Positions 2,176 through 35,934 of a stretch of DNA of 64,000 bases are shown here, piece by piece. The first letter of the stretch is position 1, and each line of letters starts with the position of its first letter. Below the pieces are notes generated by a model. The model ran no database searches and was not told where the DNA came from. It worked only from the letters and a program-made list of their open reading frames with translations. The position numbers and the translations under genes were made by a program. Origin of the DNA: Adineta vaga (Eukaryota; Animalia; Rotifera); the NCBI GenBank assembly GCA_021613535.1, contig CP075497.1:6448001-6512000 (forward strand), written 5' to 3'.

Positions 2176-5100
2176 ATGTCAACGTTACATAAAAGATTTG
2201 CTCGTAAACATTCAATCGGTTCAAAAAAAGAAAATCGACCAAAACAACCGAATTCACATCAATCAATCTTTCTTGATTCATCTGATCAATCTCGTGCATT
2301 GTATTATTTAGGTTTGACATATCATCTCAAAGCAAAAGAATTGCTTTCCTCAACAAATGGTTTAATTAATGATGATATTCGAACATTATTGAGCAAAGCG
2401 ATTGTTTACTATGAGTAAGTTTCTTTTTTCTCCTTCTCAAAATCTAATAGTTTGATCTTTTCTTCTGATCTCGTTGATAGTTAATGAATATATAGTTATT
2501 CATTCTAGTTCCGAAAAGTTTTCATCCATGATCGGAAAACCAGACATGCATTCATGTTTCTTTTTCTTCTTCTTCTTCTTCTTTTGTTTCCCCCTTCTTC
2601 TCCTTCTCGTTTTCTCTCACCCTCTGTCTTTCTCGTTTGCCCATTGATATGATGATGATGATAGATGGATGGATAGTTACGTACGATTCTCTTCTATTTT
2701 CTGCTTGTCTGTCATTCGTCTGCAGTTTGATTTTCCGCGTGCGTAGCATTCATTCATTCATTGTCATTTGCTTGTTTTTTTTCCTTTAGTTGCTCATGTG
2801 TTAGGGTGTTGCTCAGTTTCCGTTTTGCTTCCAGCATATATACACATATAATTTTCTCTATTTCTCTCCGAACTATCTACTTGAGAGGTTAAGAGAAGTA
2901 AGAGAGCCAATGTAACGAAAGAAAAAAAATAAGAATAAGACGCAAAAAGAAGTTAGATTGGAATGAGAGGAAACTATTCTTTATTACGACTTTGATTACT
3001 TTATGAGAAACAGAGAGGTATCTTATTTGACAAATATGAGCAATCTATCTGTAAAGACTATGATAGTTTAAGAAAAGTCGAAGAGTAGGCGTAGGATGTG
3101 TAGATAAGCTTATTCTCAAGGCATAGTAATTATGTGTATGTGTCCGCTTTAATTCAATCTCGAAAACGATGAGTTTAGTGCATGCTTAGTTTAATCTGTT
3201 TGAGTACAATACAATAAGTGCAAATGTTCGATTCACACTTACTATTTTCGTGTAAAATGATCACATGAAAATTTGTACTCTTGCTTTTTCCCCTCTATTT
3301 ATCTATTTGTTTGCTATATTTCACGAATGACAGAGCGTTTGAAGCTACCGGCTATATAAAATATTACCATAAATTATTGAATCATTCTTGACATCATTTG
3401 TCGTTAGTTGACTCTTGTCTACCAAAATCATTCATTCAACAACGTATGATTATCTATATTCTAGCAAGTTAGAAGGGAGAAAGAAATTTCGTTATTACCA
3501 GATTTACCAATTTAAGATCTTATTTTCAGACTAAACAAAGGTCACATTTTCCATATAAATGGTCTATTATGAATAGTCTCTCTTGAGAAAGAGACAGAAC
3601 GTTCGTTCATCTACTCGATTGAAAAGAGGTTAAGATAACAATAAAGAAAAACTGAGATCGGCAAAGAAAGAAAAGAATATTCTATCCTTCTCATTTTTCT
3701 TGCGTATACGTTTTTTTTCGCCAGACATGCACTCGATAGTTTCTCTATTTTCCGTTTTAAGGAATTTTATTTGTTTGAACAGAAGAATAACAAGAGCTCT
3801 TTCTCCTAGCCTCAGTTATTGTTAGTTTTCGGGGGAAGAAGAAAAGAGAAAGAAACGAGATCTTAAAAGATAGTTCACATTTTCATCGGACGAGTTAATT
3901 TGCATATAAATGCGAAAAATAATAGATGCATCATACACTTCTAATCATAAATACGAATATCTACAATTATCAAACCTCACGTAAGTTTCATGATGAAAAA
4001 TAGTTTTTCTTCTCTTTATCATTAATCGTCCGTAAAGAAAAGAAACATAACGTTTTTCTTTTCTTGATTATTGCCTACATCAGACGATCAAGTGAATAAC
4101 AGTATTAAAATATAGATATACAAGTATAAAATTGATGATCTCTCAAACAGAAAGCATATGTCATTAAAAAAAAAGAGAGTTGATATTATTTTTCTTTTTC
4201 CTGCATTGGTCTTCATGTTTAGTTTCAATTCAAGCATATATCATGTGACTGTAATATTTAGCAAATATATTCAAGATTCCTTAGGGAAAGAAGTGTGTGT
4301 GTGATGAAGTTACTCTTGTTTAATATACTGAATTTTCCTTCATTAATGACTAGTATAGTTTTATTTCTTTCGTTTACTAAGTCATTTCACACACACACAC
4401 ACACACACACCAACACGTGATGTCATGGAGTTGCTGAAGAATAAGATTATTCTGTACATTCTTTCCCTCTTTTTCTTCTCCAGATAGAACATGTCAAACA
4501 ATTGTCTTGCCCTATTCATATTCTCATATGATAGATGTTAATAGTTGTATCAGTTTGTTTATTCCACATATGTATTGTCATAAAACAGACAAACATGTCT
4601 TATCTTTTTAGTTGCTGTCCATCTTCCATGTCTTATCCTATTAGAATAACATTGTGTTTTTCTTTTCTTATGCTTGACAGAAATCTTTCCATATCAAGAC
4701 ACGAAACAGAAACAATGAGAAAGTGGAAATTAATATTGATTTGTTTATTTTTTCATGTAGGCAAAATCTCGATCTCAATAAGGAACTAAACGACAAAGTG
4801 GCAGAAGGAAGAACATTAGGAAATATTGGCAATGTCAATTATTTATTACAAGATTACTCAACATCGATTGAGTACCTTGATAAAGTAATGAGCAATTCAT
4901 TGTTAGTTAGTTTGTTTTTCTAACATCAAATCATTCTTTTTAGCGTTTGACAATTGCAAAAGAATGTGATGATCAAGCAGGTCAACGCCGTGCTCATGGC
5001 AATCTCGGCAATGCTTATTTGTATTTAGAAGATTTCGATAAAGCACTTCATCATTATAGGTATATAAAAGGAGAAAGAGAGAGAAATGATTTCTATTTAT

Positions 5101-6906
5101 GAAATTCATTTGCATTTTTATCTTTTAAAGAGAAGCAATGACTATTGGTGAATTAACACATGATGAATTATTTATTGCACGAATGAATTTTACTATTGGT
5201 CGTGTTTATAGTTTAAAACAAGATTATGATACAGCAATTTATTTTCATGAAAAACATTTAAATTTAGCACGACAATTAGATGATTCAATAGGTCAATGCC
5301 GAGCATATTATATTTTAAGTCAATTAAATGAAAAAATCAATCAACATGAAAAAGCTACGAAATATGATAGTCTTTATAAAGCTCTTGCACGAGAAGTAAA
5401 AATAAATACGAACTTTTGAAATTTATTTCTTATATTCAATCAATTTAGATTGATGAACCATTCGAAGACACAATATCAATGTCCACACATCGGGACCAAC
5501 AAAAAATATTCTCAAAGTTTGTTTTCAATGAAATTTTATTCGATCAAAAGAATCCGTTCTGTTTTTCTTTCTCTTATAGAATCTACGTACCGATTCGATT
5601 AGTATAAGTTTATCGGAAGGTGGTGGTACTAATAATGGTTCATCAGGTTCTGCATCTCAAAGTCCACATTCATCACGTTCAAATGCAAGCGTTAGTAGTA
5701 GTATAACTGATGTGCGTTCATTTACTAGTTCACATCATAATGCAACGAATGATAAATCGTTATCAAATAAAAGTAAAAAAAGTAAAACAAATTCCAATAG
5801 TTTAAAATCAAATTTCATGTCACATTTGGGTAAAAAATCACCAATACAACCACGAAAAGAAGTGAGCTTTTTTTCGAATTGAAACGATTTTCTTATCGAA
5901 AGTTCTTTTTCTTCTTTAGTCATTACCAGCTGATCATGATGATTTAGTTGATTTGGTTTGTCGAATGCAAAAATCACGCTTTGAAGATCAACGTTGTGAT
6001 TTAAAATCAACAACAACAGCTACTCATGGACCCAATAATACCAATACATTACATGGACATCGTACGTAGTTTTACTTTAATAATTAGTCGATTTTATTGT
6101 TTGCTTGTAAAAATTCTCTGTAACGGAAATGATGATGTCTAGGAAAAGCGGAAACAATTCTTTGAGTATTCATTCAGAAAATATTTGCATACCTGTTTTG
6201 AGGTCATTTGACTGGAGAAATCGGAAATGTAATATCTAATTAGAATAAATGATGAAGGAAACACTATTTTTCAATAAAAAAAATACAACGAAATAGATCG
6301 GAAAAAAAATTTAGGATTTTGTTTTTTCTTTCGAAATTAGGTTCAAGTGTTCAACTCGAAGATATTTTGAATACAGTCGATCGTTTACAACAATCTCGTC
6401 TAGATGATCAACGAACAAATCTACCATCAGCAATTCATCGGGATAATAATAATAATAACAACAACTCGAAAGCAAATCGACGTCTTTCACCATTGAATGA
6501 ACAATTTTTTGATCAACTTTCAAAATGTCAAGTAAGAGATGATTCGAGAAGAATCGAAGAAATATTCATTTCCTTTCGTTAGGATTCTCGTCTCGATGAT
6601 CAACGAGCTGTGCTCATACCGATTCATAATCATAATACTTCATCAGCAAGGCCAGCATCTGCATCATCAATTATGTCAACAAGAACTACAACAGCAACAG
6701 AATCACCGTCAAAAATTGTTACGAATGAAGCTACATCAAAAACTCTTCCAGATGATGATTTCTTTTCTCTTCTCAATCGTTTACAATCACGTCGAATTGA
6801 TCAACAACGAACATGTTTACCGGCAATAAATATACAAGCAAATTCTCCGCTGGTATCACCGAATTCCAGTAGTACACCATCAAAACGAACCCGTGTGAAA
6901 CCATAA
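2176..6906 (+). CDS. GPSM2: G-protein signalling modulator (Pins/LGN/AGS3 family): TPR repeats plus four GoLoco motifs, multi-exon
   Basis: TPRs SRALYYLGLTYHLKAK, EGRTLGNIGNVNYLL, QRRAHGNLGNAYLYL, QCRAYYILSQL. GoLoco motifs DLVCRMQKSRFEDQR, DRLQQSRLDDQR, FFDQLSKCQ/DSRLDDQR, DDFFSLLNRLQSRRIDQQR. Confidence 0.9.
4388..4410 (+). repeat. (CA)n microsatellite in the GPSM intron
   Basis: Run of cacacacaca seen directly. Confidence 0.9.
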
Positions 6907-33128: not shown

Positions 33129-33962
33129 CTAGTTTGTCACTGGTGCTAAACGATTGATTAAAGATATTGCACTGTAACAAAGACGTGTGACAAATGATGG
33201 ACATTGTGGTCGACTACATAGATGTTCAACAGTTTGACGAAGTTCATAAAATAATGTGCGTGTATATGGATTTCGATGTGATGCATAACGTAATGTTAAA
33301 AATCGATAATACATGAAGATAAGCAAAAAATTTGAACGTGCAACAAAGATTGATAAAATCAATAATGGCATAAGAATAATTTCATTCAATGCTACAAAAC
33401 GAAGTAGATTTGCATGATTTTCTGTAATACGATCGAGATATGATTTGACAATTGGATAACTTGTTAAGATTTGCGATAGAAATGAACATGAATGTAAAAT
33501 AGCATAAGTTGTAATTGGTATAAGTACGATTGTCATTGGTGAACCACTTAGAAATAAAAGTGAATACATTAAGTAATGAGCACTATCTTCACGAATTAAA
33601 TTAAAGAAAAATTCACGTGATAATTGAAACGTTGGGATACGTTGTCGAAGGCGTAATGCTGATGTTACTGCCGATGCTATTAAAGCTTTTGTATAATAAA
33701 CATTCGCTTCAGAATTTGAACGAAAGAATGGTAAAATATACATTAATGTAAAAAATATTGTTGCTAAACGGGATAATAATAAAACAGCATCCGTTTTTCG
33801 TTCTAATAAAACATTGATTAATGATGGAGATGATGATGGTGTTGAACGTGGAGGTGTTTGAGCTGAACTTCTTGGTGGTGGTGATGATGATGTAGATGTA
33901 GCATCATTAGTTTCACTTGCATTTGATGATGCATTGGATGTCACATCTTCGACAAGAACCAT
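33129..33962 (-). CDS. TMEM33: Transmembrane protein 33 (Pom33/Krueppel homolog 2 family), intronless CDS
   Basis: ALIASAVTSALRLRQR, EDSAHYLMYSLLF, LRFVALNEI, YYRFLTLRYASHRNPYTR, CPSF..ISLINRLAP. Confidence 0.95.
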   Translation of the reverse strand: MVLVEDVTSNASSNASETNDATSTSSSPPPRSSAQTPPRSTPSSSPSLINVLLERKTDAVLLLSRLATIFFTLMYILPFFRSNSEANVYYTKALIASAVTSALRLRQRIPTFQLSREFFFNLIREDSAHYLMYSLLFLSGSPMTIVLIPITTYAILHSCSFLSQILTSYPIVKSYLDRITENHANLLRFVALNEIILMPLLILSIFVARSNFLLIFMYYRFLTLRYASHRNPYTRTLFYELRQTVEHLCSRPQCPSFVTRLCYSAISLINRLAPVTN

Positions 33963-34354
33963 GTTGAATAATGAGAATTGATCTTAATAGTATTGCTAGA
34001 GTAGAGTAGACTAGAATAGAGAGTATTATATTATTCTATGTTTCTGACGAGTCAACCATTTAACAGAACAGAAACCTCCAAGAAAATGTGTTTATATATA
34101 GTAACATGAGAATCAATATGAAAAGATTTTTTCATCTCAATTAGTAAATGTAAATTAAGTTTTATGTAAATAATATCAAGATTTTCTATCGTAGTTTTAT
34201 CGTTTTTTGTATATTTTAAATGAATTTGTACTACTAGCGCTACTGAATTTTGATTGGTTGATTTTGTTTAGTAAATCAAACTGGACTAGAGTGGAAGAGA
34301 AGAAGCTTGTATTGTATTGTATTGTGTTATTTTTCTATACATATTCAAGAATCA

Positions 34355-35934
34355 ATGAGGCGCATCGATTCGAAATCTCATCTATGTTCGATATGTAAGA
34401 AATCCTTTTCAAGGCCAAGTAAACTTCAATATCATATTGCTTTTCATCATGAAAAAAAGGTATATTGAGACATATTTAGAAAAAGAACTTCAAGAGTATT
34501 GTTTCTTTTATAGTTCTCATTTGAATGTACTGAATGTGGTAAACCATATTCTAATCAAGATCATGTCAACCGTCATTATCGTAATGTTCATCAACAACAA
34601 AATACAAAAACAAACAAGTATTATCCTATTTCTATATGATATTGTTATCGAGAGTATTTATAATCTAGATTCACTTGTGTCATGGATGATTGTACAAAAA
34701 CATTTGTTAATAAACAAAATCTTGATCGACATATTAAACTTGCTCATGCTAAATCAAAATCAAAACCTGTTCAAGTAGATAAAATTCTTTTGTTTTAATA
34801 TGTATTTAAATTTGAATTTTTCTAGTGTTTTTATTGTTCTGAATTCGTTCCATCATTGGAATCCCACTTAATAACAAAACATGATTCGATATCATCAGAT
34901 AAATTCAAGTATGTTATACATATCAATGTGTTTCTGATTGAGTAACACGAATTATTTAGATGCCTTGATTGTTTGAAAGAATTCTCATCAATAAAACGTT
35001 TGATACATCATCGAATTATTCATACAGGTATGATAAATGATTTGGCAGTAAGGATAAAGAAATGCTTTGTTTTCTTTTATAATTAAGTTTAGACCATCCA
35101 TTGGCCTTTGCGCGTTATATACGGTTAGTAAAAGGTCGGGTGACCACCTTCGAAGACCGTCAATGGATGAATGTAATACAGATATTGTAAAACATTTATC
35201 TCATATTTAGATGAACGTCGAGAAGTCGATGTTCAATGGACAATGAATCGACTATTAGATGAAGTTGAACGAATGCAAAGTAGAGACTTTCAATTTTTTT
35301 ATTCGAATAGTTTTTTTCAAAACAAAATGATGGTTTTTTTGTAGTGTTTCAATGTCATTTATGTCATCGAATATTTCGTTCATTATTTCAACTTGATCAA
35401 CATCGTCATAGTAAAATTCATCAAGAACAATTTCCATGTCCATATTTCAATTGTGTAAAAACATTTCTTCATATGAGAAATCTTCGACATCATGTCAAGT
35501 AGATATTTACTTTTTAGAAAAGGAAATTAATCAAATTGAAAATTTTTATTTTAAGAATTCATCATGAAAATCTCTCTCGTTTATCATGTCCGATGAAATC
35601 TTGTTCAAAAACATTCACATGTCAAGCATCGATCTGTCGACATTTAAGTCGATGTCATTCATTCGATGATATCATCGAACAAATCAATAGGAAACAAAAA
35701 CAATCTCCGAATCGTCAAGAAAATATTCGACGATTTTTAAGTGGTTTCGATAATCGAAAACTTAATCAAGAGAATGAAATCTCCCAACAAATGAAACATC
35801 TTTTTAATCTTTTATTAACTGATGATAATCTCGTACAGATATCCGATGAAAGTATGGAGGTCGGATCAAATGAAGAATCATTCGATCCTAATTTATTGAA
35901 AGGTTATAATGAAATTGGACTTGTTAAATTGTGA
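34355..35934 (+). CDS. GTF3A: Transcription factor IIIA (5S rRNA gene factor), C2H2 zinc-finger array, 8 constitutive exons
   Basis: Eight C2H2 fingers from the spliced exons. The last fingers CPYFNCVKTFLHMRNLRHHVKIHHE..CPMKSCSKTF..SICRHL resemble TFIIIA fingers 8-9. C-terminal IRRFLSGFD matches the TFIIIA LASHLSGY/LTGY motif. An intronic 5S rRNA-like element supports the identity. Confidence 0.75.
35095..35169 (+). ncRNA. 5S rRNA mimic cis-element (helix I analogue, helix V, loop E, helix IV, loop D) in GTF3A intron 5, overlapping a predicted poison cassette exon at 35093-35123
   Basis: CGGTTAGTA-AAAGGTC-GGGTGACC-ACCTTC-GAA-G-ACCG aligns without gaps to eukaryotic 5S CGGTTAGTA-CTTGGAT-GGGTGACC-GCCTGG-GAA-T-ACCG. 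It is closed by a perfect 9-bp stem CATCCATTG/CAATGGATG. Confidence 0.85.

Follow-up and report, generated by a model that had tools for sequence, protein, structure and literature searches.

A putative mimic of the 5S rRNA gamma arm in an intron of a probable TFIIIA gene of bdelloid rotifers

We analysed a 64,000-nt stretch of the genome of the bdelloid rotifer Adineta vaga (assembly GCA_021613535.1, contig CP075497.1, forward-strand positions 6,448,001 to 6,512,000; hereafter the window), which carries at 34355-35934 an eight-exon gene for a C2H2 zinc-finger protein, probably the orthologue of TFIIIA. The fifth intron of this gene contains a 75-nt element that resembles one arm of 5S rRNA, and this element is our subject. 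The gene model was derived from the sequence; assembled RNA contigs confirm all seven exon junctions across two studies, and the joined translation of the model is the annotated Adineta vaga protein P0028, 355 aa in length. This protein has eight C2H2 fingers, with a 23-aa linker that lacks zinc ligands and is encoded by exon 6 between fingers 5 and 6. The layout is roughly one finger per exon, with two in exon 7. The assembly is haploid (100.8 Mb in six contigs), and both the gene and the element occur in it only once. The features of the locus are these:

34355-35934 (+): host gene, 8 exons, 355 aa, modelled from the sequence, with all junctions seen in RNA contigs
34355-34459, 34514-34617, 34669-34774, 34826-34908, 34960-35027, 35211-35279, 35345-35498, 35556-35934 (+): exons 1 to 8
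34960-35027 (+): exon 5, encoding finger 5 and ending in phase 1 at the donor CAG/GTATGA (model, RNA contigs)
35028-35210 (+): intron 5, 183 nt; the productive mRNA lacks all of it (runs X1 and X2 carry the joint 35027/35211)
35028-35092 (+): sub-intron 5a, 65 nt; its 3' end is the upstream acceptor TTTAG, with the AG at 35091-35092
35095-35103 (+): 5' strand of the closing stem, CAUCCAUUG, a stand-in for helix I, pairing perfectly with 35161-35169
35104-35120 (+): 17-nt linker, standing where 5S has loop A and its entire beta arm
35121-35160 (+): 5S gamma-arm mimic
35121-35125 and 35156-35160 (+): helix V of the mimic
35126-35131 and 35151-35155 (+): loop E of the mimic
35132-35139 and 35144-35150 (+): helix IV of the mimic
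35140-35143 (+): GNRA loop D of the mimic
35161-35169 (+): 3' strand of the closing stem, running straight on from helix V as helix I does in 5S
35170-35210 (+): sub-intron 5b, carrying ATTTAG, the canonical acceptor, and an in-frame TAA stop at 35188-35190
35211-35279 (+): exon 6, the zinc-ligand-free linker between fingers 5 and 6 (model, orthologue comparison)

The other six introns of the gene measure 51-65 nt, and the additional length of intron 5 is accompanied by a sharp change in composition: the element (35095-35169) has a GC content of 0.49, compared with 0.20-0.25 in the remainder of the intron. The element begins 2 nt from the upstream acceptor, and about 20 nt separate it from the place where the branch site for the canonical acceptor probably lies; sub-intron 5b also holds a conserved ATTGTAAAAC. 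The original prediction, made from the sequence of the window, had singled out this intron for its length and its GC-rich 75-mer and had described a perfect 9-bp stem enclosing a 17-nt linker, all of which we recover.

The likeness to 5S rRNA is concentrated in the gamma arm. Window positions 35122-35159 match positions 69-106 of the genome's own 5S (L001:1501-1619) without a gap, as had been claimed, at 29 of 38 positions, and the gap-free score of 20 compares with a next best of 11 on either strand of the window. Extrapolating from shuffled sequences, about 4e-6 matches of this strength would be expected in the gene, 3.5e-4 in the window and about 0.5 genome-wide. The letters of loop E (AGUA opposite GAA) and the GUGA loop are identical to those of 5S, so that the retention of loop E and of the GNRA loop D, also part of the original prediction, is upheld. 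The differences sit in the helices, where pairing is mostly preserved: pair 68/107 is U-A in 5S and A-U in the A. vaga element, 79/97 goes from U.G to A-U, and 80/96 from U.U to A-U. The bulge of helix IV is shifted by one base relative to 5S.

A covariance model (R1) was built from ten bdelloid intronic elements with no 5S sequence included, and over the whole 100-Mb genome it finds the element itself at 95 bits and then 53 5S rRNA genes at 35 bits (E ~1e-5). The one other match (24.5 bits, 50 nt, G000:C6:10282319-10282368) falls between two 5S gene copies and is probably a 5S pseudogene fragment; R1 found no further locus in the genome. Because a model that had seen no 5S sequence retrieves itself and then only 5S, we take the element to be a genuine 5S look-alike that is present in single copy and does not belong to a dispersed repeat. 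A 5S-derived short interspersed element (SINE) scattered over many loci, which the original prediction had named as an outcome that would overturn it, is not what the genome holds.

Searches with the Rfam 5S model, RF00001, which had been suggested as a way to recognise the element, gave a different result. The A. vaga element is unmatched even at E<=10, and no Adineta or Rotaria element is matched, the gathering threshold being 38 bits. The closest approach is made by Didymodactylos carnosus, whose two copies are matched at 21.7 bits (E 0.03, intron-only search) and 14 bits, where 38 are needed, and whose elements are identical to 5S positions 62-111 at 39 of 50 and 36 of 50 positions. This greater closeness is as expected if the element descends from 5S and has drifted further in Adineta and Rotaria. 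The beta arm was looked for upstream of the element, including in D. carnosus, and nothing resembling 5S positions 1-66 was found there. By its sequence, then, the element is a look-alike of the 5S gamma arm that stands outside the family RF00001.

A comparison across bdelloids, proposed as a check along with the original prediction, places the element in the same intron throughout. Orthologues were found, by a search with exon 8 and then with full-length database proteins, in A. steineri, A. ricciae (two copies), Rotaria sordida, R. socialis, Rotaria sp. Silwood1, Rotaria sp. Silwood2 and D. carnosus (two copies). With a Logan contig (L042), two RNA contigs (L034 and L035) and eight environmental contigs retrieved with a DNA pattern, these give 16 distinct sequences, and in every copy, from Adineta and Rotaria to Didymodactylos and the environmental bdelloids, the element occupies the same intron. 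Identity to A. vaga is 87-95% in the element, 60-73% in sub-intron 5a and 59-91% at the third codon positions of exons 5 and 6. The linker varies between species in both length (16-27 nt) and sequence, and a YAG acceptor-like site lies directly 5' of the element in every genomic sequence examined.

The pattern of change within the element is that of a predicted RNA structure. Standard pairs fill 93% of the pair cells in the 16 sequences, compared with 27-50% when the partners are slid by one to three columns, and seven pairs change on both sides; the observed values were reached by none of 500 shuffles, on an alignment that had been fitted to the model and that holds few such events. Pair 68/107 is A-U in 13 sequences and U-A in three, and 69/106 is C-G in 13, U-A in two and U.G in one, while 78/98 is A-U, G-C, G.U or unpaired. 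In the closing stem, pair 100/164 is A-U in 13 sequences and G-C in one; its A-U pair has become G-C in L042, and a U-A pair has become U.G in Rotaria. The seven letters of the putative loop E motif, AGUA opposite GAA, are invariant in 16 of 16 sequences, and the presumed tetraloop reads GUGA in 13, GCGA in one and GGGA in one, the remaining D. carnosus copy having GGCA.

Element-retaining transcripts that contain a premature stop exist. In A. vaga, the whole of intron 5 is removed in runs X1 and X2, and contigs from two studies, X1 and X5, keep the final 62-66 nt of the intron. Record 2 of X1 (35149-35238) retains the 3' part joined to exon 6, and record 6 of X5 retains it in a contig that runs from 35145 to 35279 and on to 35997 with introns 6 and 7 spliced; no canonical exon 5/6 joint is present among the assembled contigs of X5. 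In another bdelloid, the contig L034, which comes from a bioreactor total-RNA metatranscriptome (IMG sample 3300002346; PMC4796919), has six introns removed and intron 5 kept whole. The contig L035 (Logan assembly, SRR5248432) is identical to it save that 48 nt (GT..AG), sub-intron 5a alone, are spliced out. The acceptor used in L035 is the TTTAG immediately 5' of the element, 8 nt before the closing stem, and is the homologue of 35091-35092. Truncated open reading frames sought in other transcriptomes yielded two fragments only.

In both of these studies, which are separate, the contigs that retain the 3' part start directly downstream of the GNRA loop, at 35145 (X5) and 35149 (X1); no loose letters precede these starts and no AG is found there. 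They could reflect a drop in coverage at the hairpin, a cleavage site or the start of an RNA.

These contigs reshape the splicing scheme of the original prediction. Its acceptor at 35092 holds in so far as the homologous site distinguishes L035 from L034; its use in A. vaga is taken up below. The proposed 31-nt exon, with a donor inside loop E, finds no counterpart: no RNA contig supports a donor at 35124, 35135, 35159 or 35173, and what the contigs show is intron 5 kept either entire or from the upstream acceptor on. The claim that every inclusion route leads to a premature stop holds for these retained forms and fails for the cassettes 35093-35134 and 35093-35158, which stay in frame in A. 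vaga. On translation of the isoforms, use of the upstream acceptor leads to a stop within 12-114 nt in every species (in A. vaga to the TAA at 35188-35190, after 187 aa), and retention of the full intron in A. vaga leads to a stop after 174 aa.

The interpretation depends on the identity of the host protein. We consider it likely that the gene is the TFIIIA orthologue, an assignment that is plausible on the basis of protein-language-model neighbours and a modest match to yeast TFIIIA. In the ESM Atlas, the nearest named clusters to P0028 are TFIIIA of plants, chordates and fungi (0.97, 178 shared features). For P0031, an orthologue 41% identical to P0028, the first match is a plant TFIIIA-like cluster and the ninth a fungal TFIIIA cluster; its other neighbours include clusters of histone H4 transcription factor. 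A profile search of the PDB with HMMER ranks yeast TFIIIA fifth, behind KRAB and designed multi-finger proteins, which makes it the best natural non-KRAB match, collinear over fingers 1-3; the C-terminal tail, searched against the PDB, yielded no informative match. The Xenopus TFIIIA gene, which we take to have roughly one finger per exon and two in exon 7, offers a parallel that would make rotifer exon 6 a decayed sixth finger. A literature search on how the exons of the TFIIIA gene are arranged found nothing. The linker encoded by exon 6 is conserved and helical-looking (ERRE.DVQWTMNRLL) and sits at the place expected for a sixth finger; the D. carnosus gene model P0012 leaves it out, and the homologous DNA is present (L015, about 4370-4440).

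We propose, with moderate confidence, that the copy of the 5S arm in intron 5 acts as a sensor in the pre-mRNA, that the ligand is the gene's own product, and that the circuit is one of negative feedback. Under this proposal, the copied arm (helix V, loop E, helix IV and loop D), with a stem resembling helix I to close it, would have been kept since before the known bdelloid families split and would act on the pre-mRNA to set the share of productive splicing. Removal of all 183 nt would give the mRNA for the full eight-finger protein; were the intron kept, or just its first 65 nt removed, the stop at 35188-35190 would yield a decay-prone message or one for a truncated five-finger protein. Free protein, unoccupied by 5S RNA or 5S genes, would bind the mimic, and binding would shift splicing to the unproductive forms. 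A bound protein could decide whether the whole intron is excised or the unproductive forms arise, because the element lies close to both the upstream acceptor and the likely branch site. In Xenopus, fingers 4-6 of TFIIIA recognise loop E, helix V and loop A of 5S (PDB 1UN6; 7S particle), and ribosomal protein L5 (uL18) requires the helix III/loop C arm. The gene's own product is the most likely ligand because the arm read by TFIIIA is retained and the arm needed by L5 is missing, and we favor negative feedback because that sign would hold the level of free protein constant. Which protein binds, and in which direction control runs, we infer; ligand and sign are guesses.

Several observations weigh against this proposal. 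Pair 78/98 is unpaired in 7 of the 16 sequences, and A. steineri and env49 have an unpaired A.C in helix V. Folded as a single sequence, the A. vaga element reaches a z-score of only -1.9 relative to shuffles, and that of D. carnosus a z of about 0. The RNA evidence consists of assembled contigs, which give neither levels nor ends and from which absence cannot be inferred; in A. vaga they leave 35028-35144 uncovered, so use of the acceptor that would open an exon at 35093 is unseen there. Nuclear precursors may contribute to L034, since its source is total RNA. The element of L042 begins 18 nt after the donor, which makes the upstream-acceptor route impossible in that sequence and leaves retention alone. 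As for the host, two large protein searches recovered bdelloid orthologues and otherwise just generic C2H2 proteins, none named TFIIIA; the Pfam TFIIIA finger, PF22110, has no match in P0028, P0031, P0012 or P0026; and there are eight fingers in place of the nine tandem C2H2 fingers of TFIIIA.

These last three points would suit a host that is a bdelloid-specific C2H2 protein, perhaps a p43-like factor for 5S storage or export, with the mimic regulating it or serving an unrelated function, and so would the lack of a database name and of any significant non-bdelloid relative beyond generic zinc-finger proteins. We nevertheless regard such a host as unlikely. The ESM Atlas places TFIIIA beside two orthologues that share only 41% identity, and the protein's size, its layout of about one finger per exon and its single copy all fit TFIIIA. 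A 5S mimic is also what might be expected in the gene of a 5S-binding protein. No alternative candidate for TFIIIA was found: nothing in the genome matches PF22110 above the cut-off, and the best weak matches are a YY1-like gene pair. Among the Atlas clusters listed, PF22110 is carried mostly by chordate proteins. The YY1-like genes have four fingers and lie on two chromosomes (G000:C2:12828829-12829023 and C5:6942359-6942553; L028 and L029); they are probably duplicates from an old genome doubling.

The same RNA switch might respond to another ligand, a ribosomal protein or assembly factor that touches loop E and helix IV, an excess of which would raise or lower TFIIIA output, in the manner of L5 in plants. 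The present findings suit any binder of the loop E arm equally well, and the 5S mimic of plants is read by L5, not by TFIIIA (PMC3378873). What makes a different ligand doubtful is the choice of arm: the helix III/loop C arm that L5 needs is absent, with no significant likeness to 5S positions 1-66 upstream, and the part retained is the one read by fingers 4-6 of Xenopus TFIIIA.

A sensor made of RNA accounts better for the pattern of conservation than does an element acting as DNA, which we consider very unlikely. On that account, a copy of the intermediate element and box C would bind TFIIIA, which binds DNA as well as RNA, and would either slow or block polymerase II or recruit polymerase III; the best conserved block does line up with 5S positions 69-97, the part in which the intermediate element and box C are established to lie in Xenopus. 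Conservation is equally strong, however, at 98-107 and in the closing stem, which lie outside the promoter region. Compensatory changes of RNA-helix type occur at 68/107, 69/106 and 100/164, and the loop varies within the GNRA pattern alone. There is no counterpart of the A box, and the contig starts differ from the expected polymerase III start.

Several public annotations treat the element as part of an alternative coding exon, which in A. vaga would be the in-frame segment 35093-35158, encoding 22 aa; it appears as DHPLAFA..TTFED in the models for Rotaria sp. Silwood2, R. socialis and A. ricciae. Across species, an in-frame TAG in A. steineri, a 1-nt deletion that shifts the frame in R. sordida and a 3-nt insertion in R. 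socialis run counter to this, third positions are no freer than the others, the predicted donors differ between models, and no RNA contig uses the donor at 35159. The coding cassette was rejected on the A. steineri TAG and the R. sordida frameshift, and we hold it to be highly improbable. Because the stop, the deletion and the insertion are tolerated among species, the comparison indicates that the element is conserved under selection as RNA or DNA rather than as a peptide. The Rotaria and A. ricciae models (L013, L016, L017, L020, L021 and L024; P0001, P0025, P0029, P0024, P0022 and P0023) translate the element wholly or partly, with donors that are all different, and they look like prediction artefacts that arise from splitting an unusually long intron. 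The element thereby corrects public annotation, in which several rotifer gene models translate the decoy as protein. Finally, a neutral leftover of a 5S gene or SINE, or a chance match, for which one might cite the dispersal of 5S genes in the A. vaga genome and the half a match expected genome-wide, is refuted by the conservation data, namely a single copy held in the same intron of all bdelloids examined, with diverged flanks and covariation, and is hardly credible.

Beyond the element itself, the surroundings of the gene are shared among bdelloids. A TMEM33-like gene lies upstream at the Adineta and Rotaria loci and at one D. carnosus copy (L015), and a gene with an IPK domain lies downstream wherever the fetched locus extended that far (L013/L014, L015, L016, L024). 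The upstream neighbor at the orthologous loci is TMEM33/Pom33-like and on the other strand; its candidate counterpart in the window is 33800-33970 (-), and that of the downstream gene is 36074 onward (+), both from a reading of the raw sequence only. Within the gene, introns 1 and 6 are about 0.6-1.3 kb in the Rotaria orthologues (L013:3100-4297 and 5072-6290; L021, L024, L020) and 54 and 65 nt in A. vaga. One contig of run X2 joins 34759 to 34826 through nine other letters (CCTGTTCAA), which is the normal exon 3/4 junction in an allele whose AAATCAAAATCAAAA repeat is shorter by 6 nt, a polymorphism of a two-codon KS repeat.

Set beside 5S rRNA itself (RF00001), the bdelloid element shares positions 69-106 (62-111 in Didymodactylos), the letters of loop E, a GNRA loop, a bulged helix IV and a helix V that runs into the closing helix. 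It differs in that it lacks the beta arm (helices II and III, loops B and C) and is carried on a polymerase II transcript. Like the 5S-derived SINEs, it is 5S-derived DNA outside the 5S genes; unlike them, it is single copy, confined to one orthologous intron and drawn from the other half of 5S, whereas SINEs are dispersed and multi-copy and keep the promoter half. In terms of recognition, the mimic appears to keep the part of loop E, helix V and helix IV that is read by TFIIIA in Xenopus, with loop A replaced by a variable linker in the RNA and finger 6 by a finger-less linker in the protein.

Splicing control by a copied rRNA motif has a precedent in yeast RPL30: the protein recognises an rRNA motif and, by attaching to a duplicate of this motif within its own pre-mRNA, prevents productive splicing. 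The bdelloid binder would not be a ribosomal protein but a transcription factor, with an effect that we infer. If this is correct, the element would also provide a compact natural RNA of 75 nt for studies of loop E and helix IV recognition and for building splicing switches.

The closest parallel is the plant P5SM, a 5S look-alike in the TFIIIA pre-mRNA whose inclusion leads to an early stop and whose removal leads to full-length protein; it lies within a cassette exon of 175 nt, its reader is ribosomal protein L5, and it has been reported in land plants alone (PMC3378873). Our literature searches turned up neither a paper that connects TFIIIA with rotifers nor a description of a 5S mimic in the TFIIIA gene of an animal. 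We tentatively suggest that bdelloids may measure free TFIIIA by means of a decoy in the TFIIIA pre-mRNA, which would be the first animal case and independent of P5SM, made from the complementary half of 5S and read by the transcription factor itself in place of a ribosomal protein. How 5S rRNA output is matched to demand in animal cells is only partly understood, and the plant mimic does part of this job. In both systems, inclusion of a 5S mimic leads to an early stop and its removal to the full protein, and the message that holds it, that of TFIIIA in plants, is probably a TFIIIA message in bdelloids. The bdelloid element copies the other arm of 5S, with helix V, loop E, helix IV and loop D and a likeness confined to positions 62-111, and it is intronic, with intron retention and an alternative acceptor where P5SM is a cassette exon. 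With the other arm, another place in the gene and an occurrence in bdelloids alone, the two appear to share no common descent and to have originated independently. If this is so, a decoy of the product placed in the regulator's own message would be a solution that evolution reaches repeatedly.

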